Below, one piece after another: positions 729-30,163 of a DNA stretch of 30,380 nt. Position 1 is the first letter of the stretch. Each line of letters starts with the position of its first letter. The position numbers and the translations under genes were made by a program. Source of the DNA: Macrostomum lignano (lineage: Eukaryota); assembly GCA_002269645.1 (NCBI GenBank), contig NIVC01000179.1, positions 176,306-206,685 on the forward strand, in the 5' to 3' direction. The notes beneath the pieces were generated by a model that was not told the DNA's origin, searched no databases, and saw only the letters and a program-made list of their open reading frames with translations.

Positions 729-3700
729 GTAAGTCTGCCAATACGAGTTAAGTCTGTTTTGAGGGCTATGAGTTTGTTAGCTGCGATAGATTCCGCGCAA
801 GTTATTAAATGAGTTTGCCTTTTTCACGGGTTGCATTAATCTTCCTCTGTTTCCAAAGAGAGTTTTACAGTTCTCGTGTCGTATCTCATTCCAATTTTAA
901 TTCAAATCCTTATATTTATAACAAAAAGCTGCTTTTTCTTTTTACTTAGAAAAATCGTAAACCTAGGTATCAAAACTTTTATAGGCCACCCAGGTGATCA
1001 GCTGTCCGAGCTGTCGTTCGTCCGCACCGGCCTGGGCTCCCGGTATCCGGCCACCGTCGCCAGAGCTAACCGGGTGTACCCGTACAATGGGCTCACCGGT
1101 GATGTGTACTCTCTTCCACTCGAGTTCCCCGGTGACGAGGCCTTCAACTTTGCCCTATACCTGCACGGGCACGGGTACCTTGACTTGTACCTACCCTGCG
1201 TCTACACGGTCACTGGCTTGATTATTCAAGGCTCATCTGTGCACTATCCGTACTACGGTCGCTTCCTAACGTATAGAATACTCTACGCATACGAAAAGCG
1301 GCGAGACATGCTGACGTACTACAGGGACTTGGAGAACAATGGCGCTGTGAGCAAACTACCAGATATAGATGTTTTATTTGGAATTTTTGCTACTGAGCCA
1401 ATGCTTTCTGGCCAGTGTTAAACATTTAAAGTCGATTAATAATTGAGAATCATTCAAATAAACTATCCGGCTTGGTATTAGACTTAAACTCTTGTAAATG
1501 TCGGAGGATATTTTATCGTCAATATGTATTGTTATGGCAAGCTTAAAAATTACCTAATAATAACCCTATATTCAGGTGAGCTTTAGCGGGCCTCGAGATG
1601 AGAAGGAACGCCGTAGAGAAGTTTTCACCAACCCGTTCCAAGCTCAAATTGTGCGAGTGAATGCTCTGTCCTCTAGTGGCCGCTATGCAATAAAGCTTGA
1701 TTTACTTGGCTTTCCGAACGACACGAGTAAGTAAACTCTAATTTCCCCTAAAACATTGAATATTAGTATAAGAGCATACTAACAACTATAATCTACTACA
1801 GACAGCACCCAGATTCCGGAGGAGCATATGAACAAGACGATGGTGGATGGCTCAACGCTGCAGGTGACATTGAAGTACTTCTACCACCTGAACTTCATGC
1901 AGTTCAATAGAAAGTCAGCCGGTCTTCTCCGGTTCTATTTGAGCTTTGAGGAGCTGGCTGGAGAAGATGAGGTCTTCAAGGTGTACAACACAACGTGGAT
2001 GGTACGACTATCGTCTTTTAACTTTTTGATATCTTTTACATTGGCCCTAGTTATTTACCTGGATACTGTTAACTTGATTGCAGTTCAATGTCCAGTCTGC
2101 AAACCAAAGTCTGTACTTTCCACAAGTGCTGCAGCCGCTCAAGCTGACATTCCACATTGTCAATGGCAGCCTGTCTCCTGATGAGCTGAGTCTGCTCGGG
2201 AAGATGACCAACGACTGCCCGGATGGATTTACCCCGCATTTTGACGTTTGCTTGCGAACCATTACAGTGGTGGCAACTCAAGAAGTGGCGCAGAAACACT
2301 GCCAAAGCTATCGGTGGGCTGGGCAGAGGGGAACATTATTCATGCCGAAGGACGCCATGAAGATGAACTTCATTATAGGAAAATAGTGAGTTTTCAGTTT
2401 GCTAAACTTGTTTTGCTTAAAAAATTAACGTATTGTGGGGAATTTATGATAAAAAATGCATTGATACCTGGTAAATTCAGCTATGACTGGGAAGTGCATG
2501 TGGGCATCAGAAGAAACTCGAGCACCGGCAGCTGGGAATGGTTTGATGGAGAGCCAGTCAGCGATGGATCCTGGGCTGCCGAGAGGGCAGGGAATTTGTA
2601 TGCCGTGTGGCGTCCCTGGTTTAATGGATTGATTCCTAGCGGAAGCAGCACTGCCCGACTCTACTTTGTTTGCCAAATTCCTATTGTTATAAGTGAGTTT
2701 CAGCGCATTTTAAAGTTACTTTTTAATATTGCTTTCGACTACGTTCGCTGTTCACATTCTTGTTTTTAATCCTTTAGGACCGAATTCGTGTACTAAAGGG
2801 CCCATGGTTTACTACATGCATCCGTCAATGTGCTCAGGCTGCAATGACGATTTCGCTAAGTGGACCGATACTGACATCAATATTCGAGTAGCACACAATG
2901 ATGTCATGTTTATTGACGAATACTTCATGAACCGGACGACTAACTTTAGGGCTAATACGCAAGATTTTTGGATTTTTTCATCGAATCCTCTTTCTTCTCC
3001 TCCTCAAATAAATTCCAATAATGTTTTGCAGCACTTTCCTTGTGTTGAGTCTTGTAAGTGATTTTAATTGCAATCGAAATTTATGTCTGCCATTTCGCTT
3101 TGTACTGTTTAACTTATTCCTTTTATTATAGCTTGTCTGCAGCCTCTGCTTCCTGGGATTCCTGGAAAGTTAAGAGCAACTCTAAGCGGATCTGGTCGAT
3201 CGTCTTTTAATAAGCCAGAGGATGCGATTATGGGAAATCCTGTCCGCACACGAGGTAATCCTTCATGAATTATTTGTACCAGTGCTTTTGACAGCTTGCT
3301 TACGTTATACATGTAGTCTCAGCACTCAAAAACAGCAACAAATGCTAATCGCATTTATAGTTCCGTGTGTAAACAGCAGAGGAGATCATACCTACTTTCT
3401 GCACGAGCTGAATGTCACCAGAGAGGGTATCGCTTGCGCACCTTGGACGTCTGGAGTTCCGGACCGAATGAACTATAGCTCGTATTGCATAAGCAGTAAG
3501 TTAAATCGCATCTAATGCATAGGCTTGGCTGTAGCGCTTTCAGCAAACGGATATCCTCATTCACAAGAAGCTATGCATGCATTTCAGGTGCCACATCCGA
3601 GCAGCCTTCGTGCAACAAAGTCACGGGAGGGAAGGGAACCTGCCTTGCCACAAGCTGCTGTAAGCGTCACGAACTAGAACTCACTTTAAATTAATACAGA

Positions 3701-6700
3701 GGCTTTTAGGACTATTTGTTTGTTACAGAATAAAAGAACCAAAATTTAGGTGACGCTATTATTAAATGGGCGTTTAAGATTTTGTTCATAGGAGTTGCTG
3801 TGAGTTACTAGACGGTAAACGCGTCCGACTCAATCCCGCCACGACGCCTGGTTAGATTCGGGCCTGTGAGATTTTCCCGCAGAGTTTCCTGCAGAAGAAG
3901 CAGTGGGTTTCTCCTGCGGCGAAGTTTTCGCGCATGATGTTTTCCACCAAGATTCTCCTGACAGTTTTTCCTGCCAAGGTTTTTCTGTCGAGATTTGGCA
4001 ATCTGCACATCCGGGGTTTTAAAATCTAGGACCTACAAGCATTAGGGCTCAGGACCTAGAAACTATTAAAAAATCTGTAAGCATTACTGCTACAGCTTTT
4101 AGTAAAATTTTATACACGTGCACACGCTCCATGTATCCACATATATGTATTAACACATGTCATTTATTCATAAAATTCTCACATTCATATGTAGAATTGT
4201 ACAGTACGGAGTCTAAATCAACTGACGCGATGGTGATTTTCCCGCCTCCTCCCTGAGAAGCAAAGATGATAATTTTACCAAATTTTACCAGCAGCTTTAG
4301 CTTTTCTAGTACATATTTCCAAATACATTTCCTAACTGGTCCAAGATTTGCGCTGGGTATGGGATGATTTCACCGAAGGCGCTGCGCCAGGGTGCCCAAA
4401 ACCCACCAGCAAAATTTATTTTATTGTAAACTATATTGCTCTTATTGCGTAGTTCAAATCTTCGTCGATAGTGCTTTGGTTTTTCAAATTTAAAGAAATC
4501 TGGCAAATTATCAAAACTTAGGCTTCCTCCTTTTTACTAAACAATGTGATATCAGAATTTCAGTGAAATAGGCAGTCTTATATTATACAAATGTTTTATG
4601 GGGCGTTATCTTCAAACAAAAACCTGGAATTCTTGTTCCAGTTCACTACTACCACCCGAATATTGCGGGGCTGCAGGGCCACAATGCTGCTATCCACAAA
4701 AAAGTTTGGTTCAACAACAGAGAAGTGTCCGACACCGCCACATCTGGCGGTTTTCTCAACATTTACACCAACAATCAGGCATCGTATGTGGATGCTACTG
4801 AATACTATTATGTTCTGGTGGACCTGAAGTTGCTGCATACAATTTCGGGTGTCGACTTCCAGAGCCGTAAGAGGCATATTTCCAATTTTAGAAATATTCC
4901 GATTTTGCTCATCTGCAGTGCGAAGGCTTTTAAGTCTATGGATTTTTAATATGATAATTTCTTGAATGATGTTGCAGTTAAAAGTATTGTAATTTAAACT
5001 ACCTGTAGTTTGAAAATTGAGTCTATTGATAAACTTAAACTATGGTAGTTCATATATATGTTACTATATCTATATAATTAGCTCATATCTGACTACATCA
5101 TAATTTTCATGAATAATATATTGATGCAAGTGACCAGTGAAAGAATAATACTTGAAGTTTATTTTTTAAATTTTCAATGCCCAAGCAATTCGTTGGCCAA
5201 AACTAGTAGTGCATATACGAGCTATATAATTAATGCACTAACAACGATAACAAACAAAATACCCCCAGGATCTAGAGTAGCGATGACAATGTCGGCCGAT
5301 AGAATCCGGGCCGACGTTATTTACCTCAATATATTTAAGTAGATGCCATAAATTGTAAAACAAAAATAAGACATCAGTTTTCAGCTTTTTTCAGCATACA
5401 AAGCACATCTGCAGATCGCTGGTGAAACCTCATGCTTATATAATATGAATAATTACGGAATAGGTCACCGACTCGAGAGTTGCATACCAATAATTTGTAT
5501 AGACATGCTGAAATCAGTCTATATCCCTGCATCCGAGACAGCAGTCAGATGGCTAAAAAACGCACCCATTGCTTTTTAACTCCACCCGTTTCCTCACAGC
5601 AACCAGTGGCCAGTACCCGATCCACGTGCGCGTCAGCAGCAGCTATGACTCATCTCTGGGAGAGCGCGCCTTTATCAACTGGCCTCTGTGCGACTCGCTG
5701 GAGCTATCTGTCAGCAGTCTCACCGAGTACAGCTTCACCTGCTCCAGCGTCATGCTTGGTCGATATCTCGTTCTCACCAAGTCCGCTGATTTGGGATTCT
5801 TTCGGGTTGATCAAATCTTTGTGTTCGCAGAGGAGTGTAAGTTTTTGTCTTTTCATTGGTCCATTTTGTTTAAATTACGATTTTTTTTAGTAGTAACATG
5901 CCCAGCAATGTTAATCCCCAGACTATGACTACGACTCGCAAGTGGACATGCGAGTCACATGGATGCCGGATGAGACGATCTCGAAGGCTCTGCAGACTAA
6001 CAATGTCACATTCAATTTGCTCATTCGCAACAGACTGGCAAAGATCTGGTTCACCGATCAGTATGGCTACTTGGAGGCCATGACCAATGTAGGAAACCAG
6101 TTCTTAATGTCCAATTTTCATGCCAGTAAAGCACCCATTTCCTAAAACCAATCAATACTCATGCATTCCAGCCTCGCTACGTGCTGATGCTGCAAGGAGA
6201 CGGAGCGAGCCTGATCAAATATGTCGGAGGGCAAATCGAGAACAAAGACTACTCTGTAAACAGTCCGGCCGCATATGTGCTCGAAATGCTGAACAGCTCA
6301 CTCAACCGGACAGCAACTCATAATACACAGGACTTTGCCAAGGTCTGCGTTACCTGGACAGCCGACAACAATGCAACTACGTTTTTCACCTACGTAGATG
6401 GCCAGCTGATTGGTCAGTCAACGGACTTCCGTCACGCCATCCCGATCAGAAAAATAGGCTACTCAAACGACGTATACAGCACTGGCACAAGCATACAGAT
6501 GTACTTCGATGTGAGGAGCACAAAGACTATGTCAACATATCGGCCACAGTACTATTTCCACCAAGAACGAGTTTATCTTCAGGTAGCCTAACTTTTTTTT
6601 CTCATTTTATTTTCGGAATATGCGCACTCGAGCCCAACTGAATAAAAAAAATCCACTCGTATTTTTTCTAGGCAACGTTTGACAAGTTCGTCAGCCTGCA

Positions 6701-9700
6701 ATGGATCACACTGCAAGGGGGGCCGGGTATCAATGTTCTCTCTAACTCATGGACAACCGTGCTGAGCTACTATATGTACTATAGCGAGAATGCCCGCTAT
6801 TGGAGGTCACTCTACAACAAATTTGTAAGCAATCTCACAGATACATTATAAATGATAAATTTATGTTCACAGATAAATTATTTTAAGCAACTAAAATTAA
6901 ATTTTTTGTGTCGATAATTCCCTAAAATATATAAGAGCTACGATTTACAAGAAAACTAATTTCCCCATATTGCAGCTGTTCATTGGTCCACGTCAGACGC
7001 GTCAGGCGGCAAGTGTGAAGCTCCTGCCTGACCTGCGTACACTTGCTCTCAGAGTTTTCCCCTACCAATATCAAACACGGAACGAGTTGAAGTTGCAGCT
7101 GTATGGTTGTCCTTATGGTAAGTAAACCATTTAATCACATATAATTTCTGTTATGACAATTTTAGCTAATAAAAGTTCTGATTTTCAGATACAAAAGACG
7201 CCTCTCTGCCGTATATCGTGTCGAACTACAAGTATAGGTACTACAGCTCATTCAGCTATGCTGAGCGAGGCAACGATGGTAGAGCCTACATGTTCCAAGG
7301 GTATAATCAGCACTACATGACCTACTATCAGGACTACGCTGATCCGTATCACTACTGGTTGATCTCCTTTGGCCACCTCACAATTGTTAAACGGATTCGA
7401 GTTGTGGATTTGATCGAAGAGCTTGGTGAGCATAAAGCCTGTGCCTTATTTTGTACCTTTTTTACCCAATAAAGTAAGCTCACGCGTCACAAGCCCTCTG
7501 TAGTTTACAATATATGCCGGAATCCTGCTGTAACACCTATCCTTCTATTTATACCATTAATTACTTACCATCATTTTGAATATATGCTAAGGCTTAACTC
7601 AATTTAAACTCGTACATTACGATGTGAAGTCTACCTCCTGAGTTTTACGCCCGCACTATAAAAAAACTCGGGTTGAATTACGTCTCCAAACGTGAAAGCA
7701 ATGAGAGGTGCCGATCGAAAAGCATCGGACTAATTTCAGATGCGTACGGAGGGGACGTCTGTGGCCCTTCGTCTAGCCGCACGGGATACTTTGGACGACT
7801 GAATGTCACATCATCAGGTTATACTTGCCAGGATTGGGAGAGCAACACTCCACATGTTCCCAATACTGACTGCCAAAATGCTGGGTATTTTCCTGTGAAC
7901 AATAAAACTGCCTCCAAGAACTACTGTCGCAATTGTGACAACACAAACCGCTTCTGGTGTTATACCACCAATCCTAGTGTGAGATGGCAATCCTGCCAGA
8001 TTTATTCCTGCAGTCGAGCAAACATGCGATTCGGTGAGCTCAAACCACACAATTATATTAAATTCTATTTAAAAATACAGCTCTGAAGTTTTTTAATTTT
8101 CCAGACTATGAGGAGCTAGCTTTCGCGGAGCTTTTTGTATCAAACTCTTCCTCAGTCACGCACTCCAGCGTGCAGGTGCTTGAAAACCTGGGCGACAACT
8201 ACCTGAGAGAACACATTTGGGCTGTGGAAGCTAATAAGGTAAATTTTCTTGGTTTCCAGATTTTTATTGCTTGTGCTTCAAAAATTTAATTCTATCCATT
8301 GTTGTTTTAGGCAGCGCGCTATGCCGGAATACGAAAGCTGGCTGATTACAGACGGCGACTCAGCTTTGCAGAGTACGAGGTCTATGGATACCCTGCAATC
8401 AGTAAGCTCTCGTTTTTTTCTAACTCAAGTTAAAGTGAAATAATGCAATCGTACGAACTTTCAAATAAAATACTAAAACTACTCAAACCTTTCAGATCAG
8501 CTGCATTTGCTTGGCAATCCCATCGGAATGGAGGACGGCATTATTGAGTTGAACCAGCTGGACCCGCAAGCAACTCCGCTGCCGTCAAACGCGGATCCAA
8601 GTCAGTACCCGTCACCGTACATGTTTCGGCTCAACACCCCAAAGAAGCCTCGGCAGCCTCCTGGCATGTTCTACTACTCCGGTGAGTGGCAGAAGTGCTT
8701 CCTGTGTTGATAATTTCAGATATCGAATATGCTCATGAAACAGTGATGAAATCTTGACTATTGCATGGCTGAATCTCACAAGAGAAGCTGACAACTGTTT
8801 CAGAATACCCAATAAACATCTATCTGACTGTGAGTCACACCATCCTTGGATTCGTGATCCAAGGCTCATCAATGATGGACAGAACGAATTACTGGCGAGC
8901 CTATGTGAGGAGCTTCAAGATATTCTACGGCGATGACCCGAGAACTCTGGTTCCAGTGAGGTCTTATCAGACGAGCAACAGCTACGTTGATGTAAGATGC
9001 CTTTCTGATCGAAACCAATGCTTTCTTCTCCGCTCGCGACTAAGGCATAAAAATGCAGCGCTTTTTTACCATTGCAGCACCAGTTCAACCAGTACTACAA
9101 CGACATGATGCAGCTTCGAATGGATGTCCCAGTGCCATTCAAAGCAAAAATAATTCAGTTCCGTCCTGTGAGTTATTACAACAGGCGAGTGGCGAAACTG
9201 GAAATCCTGGGCTATCCGGATGGTGAGAAATTGCATGTATTACTCCCATTCAATCCCATTTGACTCAATAAGTCGAAGTGTGTTGATCCAATGGTTTCTG
9301 ATTAAAATTATGCAGCTTGTTTTTCTTCCCGCAGATTGTGGTCTAATTTCTGGTGACCAGGCAACGCTGTCGAGCCCAACGTCAAACACAAGGAACTTTA
9401 TATTCAAGGACTTTTACCATTTCTCAGGCTTCTCGTTGAACACAAGCGGTGACCCAGTGAAGTTCCTGTTGCAGTACAGGCACATGCGTACCTGGCAGCT
9501 TGTGAACTTTACGGTTCTCGGGGAAACAACGGTTCGTAATCTGTTGCATTATCAGCGTCTTTTCCAACTGGCTGCTCACAAATACTCGAATTCGATTAAA
9601 AGTATTTACTCTGATGGTGAGCTTGCAACTCACTCGCCCACTACAGGTATTTGCCTCATCAAACGGATGCGACCAAGCCCTGCCGCACCTGATCCGAACA

Positions 9701-12700
9701 AATGAGATTCGTATTGTCATTCTGAACGGTTCCGCATCGACAATGTCCGTTCTGTTCCGAGGCTGCATGATCAAAGAGGGTACGAGCTCGTAGGCACGGC
9801 ATGACACTGTTTTTTTTCAGGGCAGTTTTTTAAAGTATCGTTTATCGGCGTATTTAATATGATTACAAGTAGTATGCTGACAATAAAGTAAAAGTACAAG
9901 TTGCATCTTCTTTATAATATCCAGAATGCCCGTTCGGCTTCTTCCGGCACAAGGACAGCTGCTTCTGGGTTCCCTACGGCATGAACAGCTCATTCCCTCA
10001 CACGGTCGCGCCGCCAATGCTGGCCAAAGAGATTTGCGAGTCAATGCACTGGAACGGCAGCGCACATTTGGCCAGTCCGAAGACCGTGCTGGAAAACCAG
10101 CTCTTCTACTACATGTTCTATAACTCCATCACCAGGTACGAGAGTATTTATGCCTAGTATCTTTGAGCATATTGAAATATATATAAACATACGAAGATAA
10201 AAAGACAGCAAAATGTATCGCTCGCTGCTTAAATCTTAGTGGTCAAAATCTGCACAAGTTTGTCCACATCGATGGCCAGTACAATCGATCATCCGGTCAG
10301 TGGAAGTGGTGGGATGGAAGTCCAGTTGACTGGAAGTTCTGGCGCCACAGCAGTCCAGGCAAGGAGTGCCTCATGATGGACTTGGAACACGGCGGAACGT
10401 GGCGCAATATCAAATGCGACACCTATCAGTCGGTCTACCAGTTCATCTGTGAGGTGAATGCACTCAACACAGGATACTCGATGGTTTCGGAGCCGATCAA
10501 CATCACTGGAAATCCGGTCAACTACTACAATCTCCGATCAGGATACAGCGCTTCTGCCGCCAATGATGGGGACTTTACTCTGAATGTTGTGTCAAAGATT
10601 TACTCGTCAACTCCGGTCACATCAGCATCAAGATTCGACTGGTGGCGTGTCGACATGCGGACTGTTCAGTATGTCAGCGAGGTGTGGATTTACCTGCGCA
10701 GCGACGTAAACGGTATGTTTGATAATAAACCAAAAAGTGTACAGCATGTTATTAATACGAATATTTTAAGCACTGCTAATAAAAATGTTCCTTTGGCTGA
10801 AACTTGATGACGGAATAGTGTATTTTGCATGTTCACGATGCTGCTTGCAAATTGATTTTATCATCGAATCCATTGTAACTCCTTTAGAGAATGCTCGACT
10901 GTATGAAGCCTGGATCTCACAAACGACGGCTGACAATCCATACACAACATCAATGTTTTACTCAATACTGTGTCAGAAGAGAACCGAAACATTCAATCCC
11001 GGGGATGTAATTGAAATGATGTGCGGATTCTCTGGACGATATGTGATTCTCAGACGGGAGAGAATTGGCTGCTGCTTCTCGTTGGCCGAAGTCGTGGTGT
11101 ACACAAGGAGATGTAGGTTAACACACTTAATTACCCTCGCGAAACTTTCATCAGGACAATGAAATAAGCATTCTAACCTATCTTCTACAGATGTGCAGCA
11201 GGAAAGACAGGCAAAGAAGGTGTACGTAAAGCGCATGATGTACTACGACAACAACTACTACATGGCGTCATACAGCGGACTCAGTCACTTGCGTCAGCTT
11301 TTTGACTGTTTCCGTGAGCTGGCACCCACATGCAAGTCCGTTTTTACCGGAGGTTCCGTAGTTTCCAAGTTCAGCGATGAAAATGCGACTCACACGAGCG
11401 ATGGAATGATCAATCGATATGGAACCAATTACAACATGCTTCAGTGGTTGCCTTACAGTACGTACGCATTTAGTTGATGGAATCAAAACCTGCTCAATTA
11501 AGTACGCAATTATTTGTCAATTTAAATAATGTATTTTAGACACTTCGTGCGATCTTCGGCTGGTGAACGGTGTGCCAGGACTGTTGACGACGAATGTCAC
11601 ATCAAAGTCTGAAACGTTCCGCTACACAGCAAAGAGCGTATCGTACAAGGTCCAATCTTGGGGTGAGTACAACATACTCGAGTTAAATCTACAGATTGTC
11701 ACAAAACTAGTAAAAAATATGCAAACAATGACCCACAGACCCCGAGTCCCAAACAGTTCAGCTTGATCGGTACCGTGTTGGCTTCTGGCCGCTGGTACAA
11801 GAAACTCAAGCAAATGACATTCAACAGGGCATGCGACATGGCGACCTCGGCTCCAATGTGAGCTGGGCCAGCGGACCGACCTTCAAGACAAACGGTGCCC
11901 TGTATTTGCTTGGTAATGCAAACAGCACTTTGCAAGTTCCGGCAAGCGGGGCGTTGGAAATGGATGGCAATGAGTACACAGTGTGCTTCTACAGCTACTT
12001 CAACCAAAGCTATGACTTCACAATGCCGGTTCTGCAATCGTCTGGAGACAGTCTACAGTTCCGATACACCGACATCAACAACTTTGAGACTCGAGTCATT
12101 CGGCAATCCGGAGCTGCCACGGTGGTCACAGGAACTCTAAAAGCTCCCTACTTCTGGCACTATTTCTGTGTGGCGGTGACTCGATCGCCTGCACAAGTGG
12201 TCGTGATCGAAGGTCACCGAACAGTTTTTTCATCCTCGGTCACAAGTGATGACCCGGTTCGATCACTTGCTAGGTATATGATACTGCGGCTGTATTATAG
12301 GTATTGTTTTATTACACAAGTTATCAAGTCACATTATTGAAGTTTTGCTATTTCAGCGAGTCGCTAGTGTTTGGAAATGGAAGCCATGGATTTTTGTTCT
12401 GCCTGCAAGTGTTTTCTTTGTCATTGGATGTCCACCAAAGCCACTGGGCGCACAGGGAGTGTGCACCATACACCAAGTGTAAGTGTTTTTTTCTCGGTAT
12501 GAGTCTCTGTTAAAGAATGGTGTATGGTATAGTAGAGCTAATGTACCGTCTTGCGAAGGCATGAAATTGGTTTAATTCAGCTGCCATTAGGACTTAAGAA
12601 TGTACTCCATGATTGACATTTTGTGTTGGTCCGGAAATTTTATAATTCCTTATACTTTGCTCCAGTGTGAATAGTTGCTCAGTTGCAAAGATTAAGTCCG

Positions 12701-15700
12701 AAAGTCTATCCAGTAGTGAATAAGGGCGGCCAAAGGGCCATGGCCCCATCTTCCAGTTGCAAGACATTGCCTTTACTTTTTGCCTTGAAACTACGAGTAC
12801 TTTATTTTGCTCTACGAATATACAAACAATGGGGCTTTAGATGGCAAAAGCTTTGCCTTTTCAAAACACTATTTTCCAAAAAGGCTCTGCCTTTTCTGTA
12901 TCCGCCTCAGGTTCAGGCTGTTTATCAGGATTTTTCTGTCATCTACAATTATTGTACTTCCATGTTGCAGCGTTAATTGCGCGGGACAACTTTTTACGTG
13001 GAATTTTTCTTTAATATTTCACTACTGGAATATTGAAGCAAATCTATTTAGGCCAAATTCTTGAAATAAAAAAATAATGTGATTGTACTTACTCTACTTC
13101 GTTCGTTGTGCTATAAATTATCAATATCACGCTGTGCTAAATGTTTTTCTTAACTTTTTTACTACGGCAACCAAATATCTGGCACAAAATGTTGAGGCTA
13201 GCTGCCAATAAAGCCAATATTGTGGTGTAGCCCGTAAACTCAATATTATAAGCATGACGCATACAACCCGCGCATACAACTCAGACTGCCGCTCCATGCC
13301 GAGTCGCTGCCCCGGCTACTTTGACCGAAGGCTGAACATTTTTCCTGGCCGAACGAGCACATCCTACAGTGAATACATTCGTTATACTACATGGTCGAGT
13401 GAAGAAACCGTGTTAAACTACTTCACAACCAACACTGGCTGCTTTGCTTTGGTCAATGGAGACAGTCACATGCGCTGTTTTCGAGATTGGCAGTTCAATG
13501 AGTTCAATACGGCGTACTACAGATATGACCAAAGAACCGACGCCCTGATGTGGATCTGCTGCGACTCCACCTTCTCAAACACAACTGCTTCCGGCCAATA
13601 CTGTATGGTGGACAATATTCAAGCTCTGTCATTTGCTGGCAAGTACTGGACAATTCAAGAAAACGGAGGAGTGTGTCCGAAGTGGACTCAGCGGATCGGC
13701 TCTCTGTTTCACGAGGATTTAGTTGAAGGCAGCCTTTACGATGCAGAGAACTATTGCAGAATGCCGACCTCAAACTATAAAAACGATTGCCCAAACAGCG
13801 GAACTGGATACAGCCAATGCAACTACTACTTCTGCGATGAGAGTGAGTACTATAAGTTGCTTGTAATGCAAAAGAATGAGCTTTATTGCTTTAAGTGTGC
13901 ATTTTAAAACTAATAATTACACCCCTCGATCAAAAGTCTGCAATACTGAACATAAATTGTACGAGTCGTATAACTGTGAGAAATATCTCACACTGAGATG
14001 AATATTTACTTCCAGACGATCCGAGACCGACCCTGGGCTCGTGGAGAGCGGGTTCAGCCGATCTGGACGAATGGCTGCAGTTGTCGTTTTCGAGGCGAGT
14101 GAGAGCTGAGAGCATCACAATTGGCTCAACTCACTGCTACCACAGCAGTGCTGTGCATGAGCTCATTCAGCGCTATGTGCTTGAGTACTCGGATGACAGT
14201 CTGTACTGGTACAGATATACAATGCCCATGTACCACTATCGGGTGAGCTGGATTTACTGGTAGAAATCTCTGTTGTTACTTTATTACATTTATTATATGG
14301 GTCCAGCTGCGCCTTTCAAAAAGGATTCGATAATGAAAAAATTACGCAGTATTTTCTATCTATAAAAAAGTTTTTCAATGGAATTTTCTTCGTGGGGTTC
14401 GTGGAAATCTGGGGGGATGCTTGCTGTCTAAGGTTACTTGCTATAGGGGGATGCTTACTATCGGGGGATGCTTGCTAACGGGGGATGCTTGCTATCGGGG
14501 GATGCTTGCTAACGGGGGATGCTTGCTATCGGGGGATGCTTGCTATCTGGAGGGGGGTGCTTTCTATCTGGAGGGTGCTTGCTATCTGATGCGCTTGCTA
14601 TTTGGGTGGGGGTATGTGTTAGCACTGTGATGAACTTTTATTTATTAGAGAATGTACTTTGCTTAGTAGCCGTCAACGGCTGAGAATTCTATTGATGTCT
14701 ATGGACATTTGTACAGTTCAATTCGGTGGCTTAAAGAGTTGCCAAAATATAATTGAAAAGACCAAGCGTCTGCAGAGTTAAGCTAAAGGCTGAGACTCGA
14801 TCAATTTTCTTACTCGTCCCAAAAAACGAACACTGGCGACGACGGCTGGTCTTATCGAGCCTCTGGAGACAGAAGCCCCAGCGGAAATTGAGCGCTGGTT
14901 CCAACGCTTCGAAGCTGTTTCCAAGCTGAACAAGTGGGATGACACCGCTCAGAAGTTCGCCCTCATCGCACACCTCGGCAAGAAGGCCTTCGCACTGTTG
15001 GCGGATGCGCTATTGCCAGATAAGCCTGACGCCAAGACCTACGCTGATCTGAAAACTCAGCTGATCAAGGAGACGAAAGCGGCGAAATCCGAGATTGCAT
15101 ACCGGTACGCGTTCCATCACCTCAAGCAGGACGACGGCGAAGACGTTTCTGCCTACGCAAGAAGGCTGCGACTGGGTTCGGAGAACTGCGGCTTTTCAAC
15201 CGCCGAACTGAATGACCGCCTGCGGGACCAATTTATCTTCGGATTGTCGAACAAGGAGATCGTCAGAAAGTTGCTCACGGAGAAACTGAAAGATCTGACG
15301 TGGGAAAAAGTAACTACGGTGGCCAATGCATGCGAGGCCGTAAGTCGCGGCGAGAGACAAATCTCAGGAGGCGAAATTCTACATGTCAAGTCAGATCCTC
15401 CTTCGACATCGAAAGCCCAGAAGCCAGCGTACCAGAAAAGCGACCAAAAGAACGGCCAATTGCGCCAAGTCAAGTGCTTCTGCTGCGGCAAGGAAGGACA
15501 TACAAAGGACCAGTGCCACCACCGGACTAAGACATGCCTTCAGTGTGGTAAGGTTGGTCATCTCAAAGCAGTTTGCAGGTGCGGACCTAACAAAGGTGGA
15601 CAACGGCCTTCAACGAGCAACAAATGGTCACAAGGAGGCGGATGGCATCCAAGGAGCAGAGTCAGAGCAATCGACGATGCAGCTGATCAAGTCGGGCACA

Positions 15701-18700
15701 TTTTCTCGACGATGACGCCGGAAGATGGTCGTGGAAGCAGAAGGATAACGCGACATGTAGTAGTCAATGGTACGAAAATCAAGGTGCTACTGGACACCGG
15801 GTCGTGCTCAACGTTCGTGTCAAGCTCGGTGTTTCAAAGCCTACTCGAACCAGCAAATGTAAGGCCCACAAGCAGACGATTCGCTGCGTATCAAGGGGAT
15901 CCAGTGCTAGTGAAAGGCGAAGCTATTGTGAACGCCAAGCTAAACTCAGTAAGTTCCGACCTAACTCTGTTTGTGGTGGACAACCCAAAAGCCGAATCTA
16001 TCTATGGCCTAGATTGGATTGCTGCCCTTGAGCCAGACCTCTACATTTTTATTACAAAATGTACGGTGCCTGAGGAAGACGGCTCGAATCCTACAACGGC
16101 GTGCTCTGTAAAAAGATTTTCTGTATCATTGGCCATTGAGGCGAGAGCAAAGCCCATCTTTTTTAAACCTCGGCAAATTCCATACGGGATTCAGGACGAT
16201 GTCAAGGCCGAGTTGAAGAGAATGGAAGAGGCTGGACAGCTCCAGAAGGTGGAATCCAGCGAGTGGGCTACACCCATTGTCTGTGTTCGAAAGCAGTCTG
16301 GAAAGGTTCGGATTTGTGGTGACTACAAGGTTACCCTCAACCCACTGCTGAAAGACATGGTGTCAACAACGCCCACAATTGACGAAGTTCTGTCAAAACT
16401 AGGCCGTGCCCGCCGATTCTCTACGTTGGACCTATCAAATGCGTACCTCCAAGTACCGGTGGATGAAGACAGCAGCGTGATGCTGACGTGGAGCACTCCG
16501 TTCGGCTTATACAGGCCCACTGCATTGGCATATGGAGTAAAGCAAGCACCAGCAATTTTTCAGTCATTCATGGACAGGTTGCTTCTAAACATAGAAGGTG
16601 TCATTTCCTACCAAGATGACATTCTTGTGTGGGGTTTCAACCAACAGAGTCATGACAACAGACTGTCCAATGTGCTTCGAATTTTAAAGGAGAGTGGACT
16701 GAGCATTAACGAGGAGAAATGCACTTTTAACAAGCCATCTATCATGTTCCTGGGATATGAGATCAGTGAAAACGGCATTCGTCCACCACCAAAGAAAGCC
16801 AAGGAGATTGCAGGATTAGAAGAGCCAAAGAATCTCAAGCAGCTGCAGTCATTTATCGGGATGGTCGATTTCTACGGACGGTGTATCAAGAATCTCGCGA
16901 GCCTGAAAGAACCTCTAACGAAACTGACCAGGTCAGGAACGAAGTGGGCATGGGGCCCAATCGAGCAGAGAGCCTTTCAGAGCATCAAGGACGAACTACA
17001 CAATGCAGTCGCTCTCAAGCCTTTTGATCCATCAGATAAGATCGTTCTCACTACTGACGCGTCACCATCGGGACTTGGTGCAGTCCTCGAGCAGTCGTCT
17101 GGGCCCGTAATATTCATTTCAAAGACTCTAACTCAAGCAGAGCGCAACTATGCTCAAATTGAACGCGAGGCCCTCGCCATTGTATGGGCTATGAAGCGCT
17201 TACACAAGTATTTGCTGGGACACAAGTTCGTCATTCACACAGACCACCAACCGTTAAAGTTCATCTTTGATCCTGGCAGATCCTTGTCAACTGTTGCTGC
17301 AGCGAGAGTGCAACGCTAGGCAATCACTTTGATGAGCTACGAATACGCCATTGAGTGCAAGAGATCTGCTGAGATTCCCGTGGCCGATGCCCTGTCAAGA
17401 CTGCAGAACAGCACGTCTGAAGGGGAGCAGTTTGACATTAGCTCAGTGCAGGACTGCCTACTAGATTTTCCAATCAACAAGGAGCGTTTGAGAAGACAAT
17501 CGAAAGAGGATTCAGAGCTCCGGAAGTTATTCGCTCTAGTCAAGTTTGGCTGGAATGCAGAAGGACTTCGAGAACTACAACAGTTTAGCCGATTCAGGGA
17601 CGAGTTAGTCATTGAGACTGTTGTACAGAGGTATTCGGCTGGTTGTACCAAAGCAGGAGCGTTCTGCAACTTTGCGATTGCTGCACGAAGGACACATCGG
17701 ACCAGAAAAGATGAAATCCATAGCTAGACAATGCGTCTGGTGGCCTGAAGTAGATCGAGACATCGAAAAGTATGCGAAAGGATGTAGTTCGTGCCAGGAA
17801 AACAAGGATCATGGGGCCACCCGACAATGGACTTCGTGGCCGGATGAGACCGAATGCTGGTCAAGAGTTCACATGGACTACGCAGGGCCTATGAAGGGAG
17901 GAAACTACATGTTGGTACTGATTGATGCGTTCAGTAAATGGGCTGAAGTTCACGTGACTAAGGGAACCACTTCATCTGAGACAATCAAGCGACTGCGAAG
18001 AACGTTCGCCCAAGAAGGCGTGCCCGTGACTATTGTTTCCGACAATGGACCTCAATTTGTATCGAAAGAAATGCAAGGTTGGTTAAAAGGAATCAACTGC
18101 CGACATGTTCTCACACCACCGTATCATCCAAGGTCAAATGGACTGGCCGAGCGCTTTGTGAGAGATTTAAAAAATCACGTCCGAGCCGCTGAAGAAGACG
18201 ACCTTCAGAGTTGCGTCGACCGGTTTCTGCTTCAATACCGGAACGCGAAACATTCTACGACCGGAAAATCGCCCTCTGAGCTGATGAGAGGTCACCTACT
18301 TCGCACCCCTGCATTTTCTCTGGCACGTGAGCCAGTCTGGGTGAAAACCTACAACAACGAGATGACAAAGTGGAAGTCTGGCGAAGTGGTGGCAACAGAG
18401 GGAAAGGTTGTGGTCGACGTTGAGCTGGAGGACGGAAGGCGTGGACGCTACCATCGTGAACAGACAAAGCCAAGGAGTTCCGGTTCCGATGACCTGGTGG
18501 AGACGGAGACTGAAGAACATGTGCACACGGATCAAGAGTCTGGTCTTCGGAGAAGTAATCGCCATCGGCAAGTACCAAGGCGACTTGAGTACCGCAAGCT
18601 TGGTGTACCTACCTAGCTGTTAACTAATGGGAAGGAGTGATAGCACTGTGATGAACTTTTATTTATTAGAGAATGTACTTTGCTTAGTAGCCGTCAACGG

Positions 18701-21700
18701 CTGAGAATTCTATTGATGTCTATGGACATTTGTACAGTTCAATTCGGTGGCTTAAAGAGTTGCCAAAATATAATTGAAAAGACCAAGCGTCTGCAGAGTT
18801 AAGCTAAAGGCTGAGACTCGATCAATTTTCTTACTCGTCCCAAAAAACGAACAGTATGCTTGTTTTCTATTTAGGAGAATGCCTCTATATCTGTGAAGGC
18901 TTTATTTTATTGTGTCCTTTTTGTTAATTCCGAAAAAAAGAGACTCATAGCAGACATCTTTGTTCACGACAATTTTACTCAAGAAAGGTTGTTTATAAAA
19001 CTGAAGAAATACTTAGTTATTTAAGAAAATTTGCCTTTTTAATGGATTTGCATAAATAATTTTTGCTCCTTGCTTATTGAAAGGCGGCACTAGATTGCTA
19101 GTCTTTGTTCTTAAATACTACGAGCGTATATTGCTAGATATTACTTAGATAGATATTAGATATTAGGTATTAGATATTAGATATTAGATTTCAGATATTA
19201 GATGTCAGATATTAGATATTAGATATTAGATATTACGAGCTAGATATTAGATATTGCTATATTGCTTATAGCGATCTTATATTGCTAGACTGCGTTCTTA
19301 TATACAGCATCCGCGTTTTTGTATGTACTCAAGAGTCTGCGGAATCAAATCCTCCTAAAAGAATTATTATTGTTATTAGCCTGCAGTATCTGCGCAAATG
19401 CGTAAAAATAAGCTGTTAGTGTTCAACCTCAACATAGAGTTACCGATCGCTAAAATGCGAATTAAAATAATTTAGTTGACGCGAAATCACTCAGATTCTG
19501 TACTTGTACAATGAACTTGTACTCGATTTCTCACCAGACGCTGTTCGGTCCCTACAACTCGCCGGACACCTGTGGCTCATCAACCGAGCGCCTCATTCCG
19601 TCAGTGGAGGCTGCATTCCTGCGAATTTACTCCCTGGCCAACACAGGTCGCACAGCAGGAAAGCTGGAAGTTTTTGGCTGCGTCGTGGAGCCCTACGCCC
19701 TCATACTGCCAGAAATCTACTATCATCCTTACCAAGTGTCCACCACCAAGATCGGAAACAGATTCAATGCTGACCACGTGGTCACTTCGATCAATCTAAA
19801 TTGGGGCACTGATGTCAGCTACGACGGAGTCTACTATCGACCCGGATTTCGAATTCATTCAAAAGTGTCCTATCTTATAGTGACCTTCGAGATTCCACAG
19901 CGAGTGTTTGCTGTGGTGACTGCAGGAGGCAGCTCTCATTACGTCGTTTCATACGAGCTGTTCTATGGCGAAACAGACGAAGCTCCAATGCAGGCCGTCA
20001 ACAGCTCTCAAACGGGAAATACCACATTTCTCGGAAACCAGGAGGACAAACAGTGGATTCGACAAGATCTTCAGGCTCCCGTTGTTGCAAAGTACATGGT
20101 GTTCAAGCCACAGCAAGTCAACTCGCTATGCATATTCAGACTGGGTTTCCTCGGATTTCCAGAAGGTAAGGCTTATTACGCAGAGAAAGTTCATCATCTC
20201 ATGTGACTTGCAATTACTGAATTATTGTTTCAGAGTGCCCTGTCATAAACCATGCGAGAATGACGGAGAGTGGCGTCACTCTAACAAGTCAAGCCAAAGT
20301 AACAAGCGGACCGAAATCCGAGTATCGCTTCGTTCTCGACAATGTTCACCACTTGTCGAACGTGAGCCTCTCTCCGACGGGTTGCTCAGCAAACCAAACT
20401 TTGCAGTTTGAGTTCCTCGACTTCAACAACAGCGTTGTTGCGTCCTACGTACGTTTTCTCTCTGTTTGTCATGTTCACAAAAAGTAGCAACCTAAATATA
20501 CACGAGACTTTACTGAAGTACTGAATAAATTTTAGAATAAGACGGTTTTGGCCACCAACTCGGACATTTGGCTGAATCGCACAGTCACGGCAGCACAGAT
20601 TGTTGTTAAGAAAGTTAACGGAGACTTCTGTTCAGCAGTTGGTCTTAGCTTTTACGGTCGTGAAGCTGATGGTAAGTTCAGCAAAGAAATTTTGAGTGGC
20701 GTACGACATAGATTCGCAGTTTCTGTTTAGTTTGCAGATCGAGAGCTCATTTTTACATTCGTTCTAATGCAGAATGTCCTCGGAACTTTTACTACTACAA
20801 CGGGCGCTGCGTGCACTACTACACGGACTACGAGGCCTCCGTGCACAGAGAAATCGCACGCCAATATTGTGCGAACATGACCTGGGCCAGCACAGGGCAC
20901 CTCTTTGTGCCAAGGAGCTTCTATGACAACACGGTGATTAGAATCGGTTACGCTGATCTCATGCAGTAAGTGCGCATATATATGTATGTAAAAAAATATT
21001 GCACGAATTAATACCATTCTGTCGTCCCCGAAACTAAAATTTAAAATCAGTCATGTTTCATGTTATTGTGCATGCCGTTTTGTTTTCGTAATTTTGTAAT
21101 CCATATATTCTAATGATATTCATCTAGCTAGCGTGCTAGGAAGAAAACGCATTTATGTGTAAACGGGCATGTAATAAGAACCGCTTTAGATATCTTTCTA
21201 ATGGTAATAATAATAGTAACAGTCAGTAGAATGAGTAGAAAATGTCAATAGAACTTTTTAACGGAATCATACTTGAAAATGAAACTTCAAGGTCCCGTGG
21301 TTCAGGAAGCAGTTTTGCTGCCAACAGCTACCGAGTTCACATCGGTGTAATCAGAAACGCCAGTGGAGTTTGGGTGCTTGGGCACACTAACCAGCCTCCC
21401 GTGTGGAAGAACTGGCGCTACGACGAACCTGCTGCAGCAGACACTTGCGCGTACTCAACCCTGTTAACCGAAAACTGGAAATCGAGCACTTCATGCACGA
21501 GCTCTTTCGTTGTGTGCGAGGTTGAGGCTGGTGAGACTCGGATGTTCCTTTAATTGCTTAATGCCTGGTATCCATGCGCTAGTAGCGTTTAATATCGAAA
21601 TGCAATTAATGCATTCCAGCCAAGAAAGCGAGTCGTCAATGCGACAACATGCTGTACAATGTGTACTTCGATTCGAAGACCACAGTACTGAGTCAGGCCG

Positions 21701-24700
21701 GATTGGACAAAGTCTCTCAGCCGTGGAGACGCGTTGCGGAGACTATCAAGTATTGCCAGAACAACAAAGACATTTGTGGAACAATGGAGATGATTACAAC
21801 TACAGAACAAGTAACAACGATCTCTCGCATGAACTCTCTCAGCGTGGGATTTGAGACAACTTCTCTGTCTGGAAGTTTCGTGATTGAGCAAATCTGTCGA
21901 GGTAAGTTGATACTGGCTAGAAGACGAAATTTGAAGTTGTTTTTTACTGATAAGATTAAATATATTTTTGAGTGCATAAACTCGACTTGCAGAGTCTTGC
22001 TGGACAAACTTTTTCGACACGAATAGCACGATTCCGATGAGCTTCGCTACCGGCCACATTTGGGCCGGGTCTGCTGCAGGAATTCCTCTTGCCGTCGTGC
22101 CTGATGCGACGACTGGCTTCTGGAGTGGCGACTGGGTCACGGTGCGTTTCGGCCAGCATTCTCTTTTAAGTTAGATTTTTTTACATAGAGCGTGTTGTAG
22201 CTTTCATGGGAATATAAAGCTTTTTAATTCTATAATACCGGATTCTATATAATCCGGATTCTATATAATAAGGTAGAAAAGCATAGACTAGCTTAAAAAA
22301 ATTTCGTATTGTTTTGGAGTTACGCTCGTATTTGTTGATACAGACCGTTTAATATGGTCTGTATCAACAAAATTCAAAGCTTTTCAATTAAAAAAGCATG
22401 CGGGAGCATCAGGTCGGTTCCGATCTCTTAAATATTGCTAGAATCCGGACTCGCTTGCTCCATATCAACATGTGCCAAGCAGTTCAGTAATTCCCATTCG
22501 CACTTTGTAAACTTCCCATAGCCTAAATGTATATTATAGCATGTATAGTGTAGCAACCATGTACTCGTACATCTATTTGCATGGTGAGCAACTAGCATGC
22601 GTGAGAATTGCATTCTGTGCGCGCGTAGGCTTAGTAAGAGGTATTTAGGATAAGAGCAATGTACATGCGACCCCAAAGCTCTGAAGTCAATGGCCTGAAG
22701 CATCGCTTTCCTCCTCAAGCGGATTAAAAATCATTGGCAAAGAAACGAGAAATATAAACGGAAGTAAAACAGTGCTTTAAAGAAACTTTATTTAAATTTC
22801 AGATATCATTCAACCAGACATTCCTATTTACTGCTGTGGCAGCCAGCGGTTCTGGCATCGAAGGTTCCGGTGACCGAGACTACTCAGGCTTCGTTCTTGA
22901 GTATTCAGATCTCACTCAGGCTGGAGCTCCTATGGTGACTGGCTCCTTCTCGTCTAGTGGGTCAGCGGTAAGATTCAAGCTGGAGCAAAATGTACATTGA
23001 CTGAATACTTCTGGGTCGAATTTTAATGAAATTTCGCTGTTTCCATTATAGGCTACTCTAACCGTTCAAAACGGCTACTTGTCTTGTCCGTTTAATCACA
23101 TCATTCGAAAGCCATTCTACACCAACAAGCTGAAGGTTATAACGAGTCCGGCTGGAAATTCAAAGGCCATGAAGTTCGACGTCTTTGGATGTCCAGTGAA
23201 TGGTAAAGTCTAATTTAAAATACAGCATTTCAGATGCATTAAAGATCAGAATGTCACTCGGTACTTAGCTCGTATTTACGCACATTTACCGTCACAATCA
23301 ATCTACCCGTCACAATTTTAGTTGATTCGCTTAGCTGCATAAACAGATCCGAGATCCACGTGCCGCACTCCCTGTACGGAAACATGCCGGCTCAGTGCCA
23401 AGACAACTGGATTGTGATCTACAAGAACTTCAATGCGAGCTGGAGCATGAACCGCAGTTACGAAGATTATCGACGCGGATTTTTCGACATGGAGAGTCTG
23501 CTAAATTCCAGCAGCTTCTGGATCGGAAACGAAGCCATGCGCACCCTCTCCATCTTCAACAAGTACCGACTGCGGATCGACATGTGGGACAAGAATGGCA
23601 AGTTCCAGTATGTGGAGTGCGACCGATTCTGGGTGGATTCGGTGTACGAAGGATACAAGGCCCACTTTGAGAGCTGTTTCTCTGCGTTCTCGGATTCTGT
23701 GCGACTGTCAAGTCACGACATCGCCCAGTTCTCTACTTTTGACAACGGGCCGCAGAAAAGCTGCGCCATCTCTGGAGGCAGTGGTTGGTGGTACAAATCA
23801 TCGGGTTGCTATGACAACAAGATGACTGGAAGCGGATTGTCCACATCACCCGATAAGATCTCATGGTCGCCTTCATTCGAGGGCGGAAAAGTGCTGATGC
23901 GGATCATTCAACCCAGCTATACCTATCCAGGTAAGTTTCTGTGTTGCATTTAATCATATATTTGAACAACAGCAGGTAATTTGTCACTCCTATAATGTAC
24001 ACGCTACTCCTTTAAAATCTTGCAGCACGAAATTTGAGCGAGGACTGTACTAGCGACCTCAACTGTCAAATTGTCAATCGATCTGTGTGTCTTGCACCAG
24101 ATACGATGTACCGAACTCGATGTAACTGCACTGTCGGTTGGTACCTTAATCAAGGAATGTGCAAGCCAGGTAAGCATTCAATAGTTTAATAGTTCTTGGC
24201 GCGCTGTGATAAACATACTCGTACTAACTAAAGTTGTAACTCTGCAAAACTTTTCAGTTGTCGACCTTGAAGCCATCGTATCATCGATTGTGTCTGGCTT
24301 GAGCGGCTCTTTTGTGCGCTCATTTAGGAAGAATTTCACTCAAGCTCTGACACTAAAAGTTCGAAATGGAACAGCCAATATTACTGCGGTAACTCCACCA
24401 AGCATCAACTACAACTTCAGTGTTTTTCTGTGGTCGGAAATGACTTCTTTGTACCCAGATCCATTGGCCGACCACTTCAAAGCAACCTATATGCAGGTTC
24501 TCGATGGAGATCAGGCTTCCTACGGTGCCATTGGACTGAATCTCACCTTCCAGGTATTCGGAAGCGTTCTTCTCGCTACTGGAAGCAGATGCAAAGCCAG
24601 CTCATATTTATGTATAGCCGTTATCAACTCCGACGACTCTTACTACCGGGATCTCAACTACACAAACAATGGTGGATGTTCGTCCATCACATCAGTGCGA

Positions 24701-29942: not shown

Positions 29943-30163
<221 letters not shown>

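Follow-up and report, generated by a model that had tools for sequence, protein, structure and literature searches.

The kringle is a compact, autonomously folding module with disulfides in the pattern 1-6, 2-4, 3-5, the Cys1-Cys6 bridge linking its two ends. Compactness, self-folding and tied ends are general properties of inserted domains, which makes the kringle a plausible insert. According to exon-shuffling theory, modules of class 1-1 can enter any phase-1 intron. To our knowledge, nearly all documented shuffled modules lie between domains, and an insert within a domain would be expected to break its host. A domain inserted into another one is typically 50-200 residues long, its two termini lying near each other (PMC13114784), and phase-1 boundaries are expected for exon-shuffled 1-1 modules (PMC8001218). 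The fucose-binding motif of the F-type lectins is H-X24-R-X-D-X4-(R/K), and the Arg79-Arg86 segment of eel agglutinin is the CDR4 loop of the sugar-binding face (PMC5712786). In the present work, a stretch of 30,380 nucleotides (nt) of contig NIVC01000179.1 (assembly GCA_002269645.1, positions 176,306 to 206,685, forward strand; hereafter the window) was analyzed, in which a kringle exon lies between two halves of what appears to be a highly divergent F-type-lectin-like domain, called FTP2 below. The likeliest account of this arrangement is a lineage-specific insertion by exon shuffling that has given rise to a constitutive nested domain.

The kringle exon

One very large gene on the plus strand spans the entire window, and Pfam scans were run on its exons. 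The exon chain from 4642 to 11112 was rebuilt by hand, each junction being checked for AG/GT and for frame. Around the kringle the features are the following:

7189-7425, plus strand: N-terminal half of FTP2, 237 nt, entered and left in phase 1, ending ...PYHYWLISFGHLTIVKRIRVVDLIEEL
7426-7739, plus strand: intron upstream of the kringle, 314 nt, GTGAGC...TTTCAG, phase 1
7740-8033, plus strand: kringle exon, 294 nt, class 1-1, product (D)AYGGDV-C...C-SRANMRF(D)
8034-8104, plus strand: intron downstream of the kringle, 71 nt, GTGAGC...TTCCAG, phase 1
8105-8238, plus strand: first exon of the C-terminal half of FTP2, 134 nt, phase 1 to 0, (D)YEELAFAELFVSNSSS...REHIWAVEANK
8239-8310, plus strand: intron within the C-terminal half, 72 nt, GT-AG, with in-frame stops
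8311-8401, plus strand: second exon of the C-terminal half, 91 nt, phase 0 to 1, AARYAGIRKLADYRRRLSFAEYEVYGYPAI

The exon 7740-8033 is preceded by AG (acceptor TTTCAG), followed by GT (donor GTGAGC) and open in a single frame. Its product matched Pfam PF00051 with 56.1 bits (E 4.9e-15, for a cut-off of 34.3) and each of the plasminogen and HGF kringles present in the PDB with 36-58 bits; against the five kringles of a mammalian plasminogen its identity is 33-46%. The six canonical cysteines are all found, at residues 87, 109, 142, 153, 165 and 170 of the 252-amino-acid (aa) nested segment, together with two additional ones at 124 and 145, and these eight are the only cysteines of the segment. 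The core motifs NYCRN, WCYT and W align with those of the plasminogen kringles. Judged by these matches, the kringle identity of the exon is unambiguous and far beyond chance. An earlier reading made from the DNA letters alone (the sequence-only reading) had described a complete 294-nt kringle exon of phase 1-1 at this place, and the splice sites, the frame and the Pfam score all agree with it. The exon has the properties of a class 1-1 exon-shuffling module: the flanking introns are of phase 1, the length is a multiple of three and the exon limits are those of the module, the Cys1-Cys6 core (residues 87-170) lying within exon residues 80-178 with linkers of 6-7 residues. The same reading had placed this exon between an N-terminal half at 7189-7425 and a C-terminal half at 8105-8401; the former stands as a phase 1-1 exon, whereas the latter turned out to consist of two exons.

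In plasminogen kringle 4, the lysine-binding site contains the acidic pair Asp55/Asp57. The corresponding stretch of the window kringle reads NCDNTNRFW against NPDADKGPW; only the first Asp is conserved, Thr taking the place of the second, which casts doubt on canonical lysine binding.

No transposon or duplication signature was detected around the kringle exon, only short repeats at chance level, and no second copy of the exon was found in the window. The alike donors GGTGAGC.. at 7425 and 8033 were considered as a sign of duplication and rejected, since they correspond to the donor consensus only. A weak kringle-like N-terminal pattern, CVNSRGDHTYFLHELNVTREGIACAPW, was noticed at 3390-3461 (exon ~3375-3485; tblastn E 0.009 to the kringle exon). 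This stretch has no Pfam match and was set aside as a donor copy; it may represent another kringle-like module, strongly diverged and located between domains as usual.

Continuity of the flanking segments

Joining position 7425 directly to 8105 keeps the frame and yields an Asp codon, as do both kringle junctions. The 154-aa product of the kringle-less junction was used as query in an exhaustive phmmer search of 1.84 billion representative proteins. This search returned two matches only, the protein A0A1I8GVY1 (P0002) of the flatworm Macrostomum lignano and a metagenomic protein (P0003). P0002 aligns unbroken over query residues 53-147, across the junction at 79/80 (E 5e-6). A fuller M. lignano sister entry, A0A1I8G5W4 (P0004), matches the window collinearly through three domains in a row, FTP2, the discoidin domain and the one after it (27-33% identity, E 3e-39), and its tblastn alignment covers 7344-7430 in the N-terminal half. 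At the kringle site, P0004 reads ESLASVQQTIEEM (junction context ...IVDMVESLASVQQTIEEMQSVSVFVGNS...), a loop five residues longer and devoid of kringle. The host domain is 33% identical to its nearest homologue. These two M. lignano entries, one of which represents a cluster of 7 sequences, are the only detected protein homologues of the region that have the same domain uninterrupted. In MAFFT alignments, the addition of kringle rows drew the N-terminal half of the homologue into the kringle.

As the M. lignano homologues run across the junction unbroken, the segments 7189-7425 and 8105-8238 plus 8311-8401 are, by homology, two halves of one conserved domain. The host is thus continuous in insert-less relatives, in P0002 and P0004 as well as in the aligned F-type lectins of the PDB. 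The last exon, 8311-8401, aligns with ASVAGLLKPATLGGFSFCEFEIYGYPNI of M. lignano and with the F-type lectin end GRYV...LSLAEVEVY. The small intron 8239-8310 is backed by the donor of the metagenomic relative and by an exactly placed gap in the tblastn alignment of P0004.

The metagenomic protein P0003 is a 62-aa open reading frame from a contig of 972 nt (L001) of JGI metagenome 3300040801. Its exon, 791-925, is the counterpart of 8105-8238, with 58% identity and the same acceptor (ag/AC) and donor (AAG/gtgagt), which indicates that the exon structure of the C-terminal half is conserved in this relative. No kringle exon is present in the 790 nt of L001 that lie upstream of the C-half exon, as against 71 nt in the window, a more distant exon being possible. 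Within this upstream intron, positions 1-660 of L001 carry a decayed integrase (rve) fragment; mobile DNA has therefore entered this intron in that lineage as well.

Other homologue searches returned only a plasminogen with a 472-aa query, only the two M. lignano proteins with the FTP2 profile and nothing with FTP3, an uninterrupted sister copy described below. No locus could be confirmed in metagenome scans run with patterns taken from the C-half exon and from the FTP2/M. lignano profile.

Relationship of the host to F-type lectins

Two further copies of the host domain had been proposed in the same gene, on either side of FTP2:

4642-4866 and 5600-5836, plus strand: copy 1, F-type-like by motif only, with the phase-1 intron 4867-5599
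10457-10712 and 10888-11112, plus strand: FTP3, uninterrupted, with the phase-1 intron 10713-10887 at the position equivalent to that of the kringle

The joined FTP2 flanks gave no Pfam match at E <= 1 and no PDB match by phmmer or hmmsearch. A custom set was assembled from PDB alignments, with six F-type lectin domain sequences of five proteins. The hidden Markov model (HMM) built on this set scored FTP3 with 29.7 bits, the M. lignano domain with 10.1 bits and the kringle-less FTP2 with 8.3 bits. None of 3000 shuffles reached the score of the M. lignano domain, and none of 3000 that of the kringle-less FTP2, whose alignment to the F-type lectins passes through both halves. Profile-profile comparison by hhalign of FTP2 plus M. 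lignano with the six PDB domains gave a probability of 72% (P 3.4e-5) over 108 collinear columns in both halves, which rose to 87% (P 3.9e-6) when FTP3 was added to the target.

With hhalign, FTP2 has Tyr, Leu, Glu and Glu where the fucose-binding motif has His52, Arg79, Asp81 and Arg86, and Glu-Leu in place of the Cys82-Cys83 pair. In the HMM alignment of the M. lignano homologue, where the Arg86 equivalent is not aligned, His52, Arg79 and Asp81 are replaced by Arg, Met and Glu. The host part of FTP2 contains no Cys at all; fish F-type lectins (CTH, RGDCC) and the M. lignano homologue retain some. The host is best described, on these profile matches, as a highly divergent F-type-lectin-like domain, and since the motif H-X24-R-X-D-X4-R/K is not present it is not to be filed as a lectin. 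Of the F-type character that the sequence-only reading gave to the host, the targeted profiles support a likeness only, without a Pfam match and without the fucose motif.

The stretch VVDLIEEL/D/YEELAFAELFV, with the junction residue in the middle, pairs with ITNRGDCC-PERLNGVEIHIG in both the HMM and the hhalign alignments. The kringle site thus aligns with the fucose-binding loop RGDCC/xER (CDR4), a loop whose length varies among the solved F-type lectins and in M. lignano. Given the alignment with RGDCC, the kringle interrupts the segment which in eel agglutinin bears Arg79, Asp81, Cys82-Cys83 and Arg86. Both alignments agree with the proposed placement of the kringle, within a phase-1 intron that splits the domain close to the RxD loop.

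FTP3 shows what the uninterrupted domain looks like in the same gene. Its Pfam score for F5_F8_type_C_2 (26.2 bits) falls just below the cut-off of 27.8, its five best PDB matches are all F-type lectins (E 0.035-0.11), and hhalign gave a probability of 95.7% (P 1e-8). In FTP3 and FTP2 alike the phase-1 intron lies 22 residues past the WW motif, and MAFFT places the two positions within 3 residues of each other. FTP3 had been drawn from 10240 onwards; that first part is the C-terminus of a C-type lectin domain, and the F-type region starts at ~10457. Copy 1 has no Pfam match and its score with the custom HMM is not significant, 755 of 3000 shuffles being as good, with an hhalign P of 0.027, so that its F-type nature is not demonstrable. 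The claim of a conserved phase-1 intron in both uninterrupted copies accordingly holds for FTP3 and is plausible but unproven for copy 1.

Another F-type-like C-terminal half, ...ANLHEAWRS...ARYIGVGSYSGSTIYYTICEIEVYGYP, was observed at 473-727. The exon has an apparent phase-1 acceptor at 472/473, ~8 residues ahead of LHEAW and near the intron position of FTP3 and FTP2, and may contain a 48-nt intron (592-639).

Origin and splicing of the nested arrangement

In the account considered likeliest, an F-type-like jelly roll would once have had a phase-1 intron in the DNA of its CDR4-equivalent loop, as its sister FTP3 has. A kringle exon of class 1-1 would have recombined into this intron and divided it into pieces of 314 and 71 nt, the introns 7426-7739 and 8034-8104 presumably being the upstream and downstream remnants of one split intra-domain intron. 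The spliced product would be a nested A1-B-A2 protein in which the host halves close as a beta-sandwich, and the kringle, its termini held together by the Cys1-Cys6 disulfide, would project from the former sugar-binding face with the jelly roll as pedestal. The host, lacking the fucose-binding residues, might serve as a scaffold, the kringle adding a protein-binding module to the ectodomain. Since neither the form with the insert nor the one without it has these residues, what is gained in function should be the kringle itself and not a gating of sugar binding. We infer the direction of the change (gain, not loss), the folding of the nested protein, its constitutive splicing and its function. 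A gain in the lineage of the window is favored by the fact that the M. lignano homologue, the sister copy FTP3 and the aligned PDB members are all uninterrupted. The constitutive inclusion of the exon, most likely on the available evidence, is compatible with its splice sites and its 71-nt downstream intron, which are typical of the constitutive introns of the gene.

Several observations weigh against this account. The host has no Pfam match and its F-type assignment depends on targeted profile comparisons. The AlphaFold2 models gave a pLDDT (predicted local distance difference test) of 31.4 for the nested 252-aa segment (alignment of 3 rows) and of 38.5 for the skipped 154-aa form (4 rows), and with such shallow alignments the folding of the host around the insert is unsupported; the low confidence is explained by the single outside homologue available for the alignment, and Foldseek on the model of the skipped form returned noise (best E 0.46). 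The outgroup is one lineage, M. lignano, at 27-33% identity and in the form of gene models, which is a narrow basis for telling gain from loss and orthology from paralogy. The acceptor of the kringle exon, with 9 pyrimidines out of 18, is tied for the weakest among 17 acceptors, and the G+C content at third codon positions (GC3) is 0.51 in the kringle exon versus 0.59-0.62 elsewhere. Finally, genomic sequence is the sole basis of the account and is compatible with inclusion, skipping or non-use of the exon, a point which bears likewise on the alternatively spliced cassette and the unused exon considered below, to the cost of the former and the benefit of the latter.

If the exon were an alternatively spliced cassette, the ectodomain would alternate between two forms, one with a closed F-type-like domain (junction IEEL-D-YEEL) and one bearing the kringle. 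Shuffled modules with symmetrical exons tend in general to undergo exon skipping (PMC8001218), and the present exon, of class 1-1 and 294 nt (3n), can be skipped with the frame kept and the Asp codon (G/AC) regenerated, the skipped product matching the natural uninterrupted domain of M. lignano. The weak pyrimidine tract and the upstream intron of 314 nt, above the median, point the same way. Frame neutrality is nevertheless common to every shuffled 1-1 module and hence not specific, both splice sites (donor GTGAGC, acceptor TTTCAG) follow the consensus, and the intron downstream is of standard length. Moreover, the pay-off of a fucose switch is undercut by the absence of His/Arg/Arg in both forms: as FTP2 and its kringle-less homologue alike lack these residues, skipping would not yield an ordinary fucose lectin, and the idea of the sequence-only reading that skipping restores a lectin and switches ligand binding is weakened. 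A cassette is therefore possible and rather doubtful; slightly less probable still is that a regulated cassette represents a splice-controlled domain-in-domain switch, a living intermediate of shuffling into an intra-domain intron. At the other extreme, the kringle frame could be a recent or decaying intronic relic, a pseudo-exon, with only the 7425>8105 product being made. The somewhat low GC3, compared with that of the neighboring exons, would fit a relic. However, the frame is open for exactly 294 nt between consensus AG and GT with stops outside, the six structural cysteines and the NYCRN/WCYT/W core are intact (56 bits in Pfam), and the even count of extra cysteines suggests a maintained disulfide pattern. 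Since the kringle is better conserved against vertebrate kringles (33-46%) than the host against its nearest homologue (33%), a decaying pseudo-exon is disfavored, and an unused exon is considered very unlikely.

As to the history of the locus, the nested arrangement could be the original state, from which a deletion removed the kringle exon in the lineage of Macrostomum. A single outgroup is on hand, the five-residue-longer M. lignano loop could be the scar of such a deletion, and the M. lignano gene models could have missed an exon. This scenario must be set against the plain intron, without insert, of FTP3 in the same gene, the unbroken CDR4 loop of all aligned PDB F-type lectins, the kringle-free state of two independent M. 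lignano models (including the cluster of 7) and the 790 nt upstream of the C-half exon of L001, where no kringle exon stands in place of the 71 nt found here; a loss is thus judged improbable. That the flanks do not form one domain, two unrelated segments resembling lectin halves on either side of an inter-domain kringle, would be in line with the joined flanks matching neither Pfam nor PDB sequences and with a structure prediction that gave no information. It is contradicted by the M. lignano homologue, unbroken across the junction, by the collinear hhalign match to F-type lectins over both halves and by the motifs SFAEYEVYGYP (C-terminal) and DG...PYHYWLISFG (N-terminal), the two ends of one fold signature; we regard it as extremely improbable. 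The insertion of a kringle exon into the FTP2 intron, followed by constitutive use, is therefore the likeliest reading.

The receptor gene

The sequence of the window is eukaryotic; its G+C content is ~44%, and the GT-AG introns are mostly 70-300 nt long. Downstream of the lectin-like modules, the gene contains:

23243-23950, plus strand: fibrinogen-C exon, Pfam 85 bits
24185-28411, plus strand: giant exon of 1409 codons with a PKD domain, Pfam 57.3 bits
28681-29232, plus strand: REJ exon, Pfam 93.6 bits

Weaker Pfam matches to C-type lectin, laminin-G-like and discoidin domains were also obtained in the gene. The combination of REJ and PKD (93.6 and 57.3 bits), both features of the polycystin-1/REJ receptor family, with fibrinogen-C and these weaker matches leads to the assignment, at the level of domain content, of a polycystin-1/REJ-type receptor with a lectin-rich ectodomain, part of which is held by the window. 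The window covers the part of the gene upstream of the expected GPS, PLAT and 11-transmembrane regions, which would be downstream of it. The ectodomain would be a mosaic of lectin-type and other modules (F-type-like, discoidin-like, C-type lectin, laminin-G-like, fibrinogen-C, PKD and REJ). For the N-terminal part of the gene, no orthologue was found beyond M. lignano fragments.

The module boundaries at 5922, 7189, 8496 and 9335 are all of phase 1. The last of them opens the following exon pair:

9335-9531 and 9647-9779, plus strand: two exons separated by the intron 9532-9646 (115 nt, weak donor GTTCGT)

The gene model 9335-9779 is backed by the C-terminus of M. lignano P0004 (KLFINFSDPAQLSTAISLRGC versus EIRIVILNGSASTMSVLFRGC). 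Between copy 1 and FTP2, the stretch 5922-7117 encodes 291 aa for which no Pfam match was obtained; it resembles a jelly roll of the laminin-G/pentraxin kind (FAKVCVTWTADNNATTFFTYVDGQLIG) and, after it, a C-terminus of the discoidin type (LKLQLYGCPY).

One intron of the receptor gene contains a Ty3/gypsy-type long terminal repeat (LTR) retrotransposon in the same orientation:

14616-18853, plus strand: Ty3/gypsy-type LTR retrotransposon with gag-like, aspartyl protease, reverse transcriptase, RNase H and integrase domains

The two LTRs, of 217 nt each, show 100% identity, so that the insertion should be recent. An in-frame stop interrupts the pol frame at 17317-17319, and a different frame encodes the integrase (17609-18613). 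A tandem array of ~10 copies of a 17-nt unit is found at 14412-14613, immediately upstream of the 5' LTR. Other tandem repeats are (TAGATAT)n at 19135-19255 and (TACT)49 at 29969-30163.

Significance and comparison with known systems

The components of this arrangement (the kringle, the F-type-like jelly roll and the PKD1/REJ receptor) and its mechanism, in which 1-1 shuffling leads to a nested domain, are already known. New are the combination of kringle and F-type domain, the location in the CDR4 loop and the clarity of the exon-level record; in our literature searches, no paper mentioning both kringle and F-type lectin was found. The record is unusually legible, with one symmetrical exon, one split intron, a sister copy with a plain intron and a distant uninterrupted homologue. 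Should the nested protein be produced and fold, an entire disulfide-clamped module would be accommodated by the CDR4 loop of the F-type jelly roll, and this would be a natural design for the display of binding modules on a lectin scaffold. In addition, an uncommon lectin/kringle ectodomain is recorded on a polycystin/REJ-type receptor from a little-sampled lineage of animals. The case has no bearing on any long-standing open question and is at present purely genomic.

Like polycystin-1 and the sea-urchin REJ receptors, the window gene has REJ, PKD, a giant exon and C-type lectin modules in its ectodomain; unlike in vertebrate PKD1, the N-terminal array consists here of F-type-like, discoidin, laminin-G-like, fibrinogen-C and kringle modules. 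The M. lignano proteins A0A1I8G5W4 and A0A1I8GVY1, which are fragments annotated in UniRef as 'CUB domain-containing protein', have the same three-domain order as the window and differ by their unbroken F-type-like domain, with the loop ESLASVQQTIEEM and no kringle.

The kringle resembles those of PF00051 (plasminogen, HGF, prothrombin, apolipoprotein(a), ROR2) in its six cysteines and its NYCRN/WCYT/W core, and known kringles also in its ~84 residues from Cys1 to Cys6 and in being a class 1-1 module (PMC8001218). In contrast to them, it is encoded by a single exon, is placed inside another domain and not between domains, and has two added cysteines (in NTDC and CRNC). The host shares with the F-type lectins (eel agglutinin AAA 1K12, striped bass FBP32 3CQO, streptococcal fucolectin-related proteins 2J1R/2J22, Sm-hPAF 4GWI) a length of ~150 aa, a collinear profile match over both halves and the order DG(n) ... 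(P)WW.vDL ... i.NR.D.. loop ... aeI.vG ... GRYv.i ... LsL.EVeVyG, and has C-type lectin and discoidin domains for neighbors, a setting found in many invertebrate proteins with an F-type lectin domain (FTLD) (PMC5712786). It departs from them in having its CDR4 loop broken by a kringle of 98 residues, none of the six aligned solved domains having an insert there.

The F-lectin repeats of oyster bindin are the closest parallel for the intron, since in this lophotrochozoan protein the FTLD is also split in its middle by a variable, recombination-prone intron (PMC5712786). Oyster bindin may thus serve as precedent for an intra-FTLD intron as recombination target, by analogy. In bindin, however, the intron shuffles FTLD halves and no foreign module is inserted. 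As in the described nested A1-B-A2 insertions, the host is broken by a compact, self-folding insert, here of ~98 aa and within the range of 50-200 residues (PMC13114784). Most catalogued nested insertions are ancient and found in enzymes, whereas the present one would belong to an extracellular mosaic protein and is accompanied by its exon-level trace and by a kringle-less homologue.

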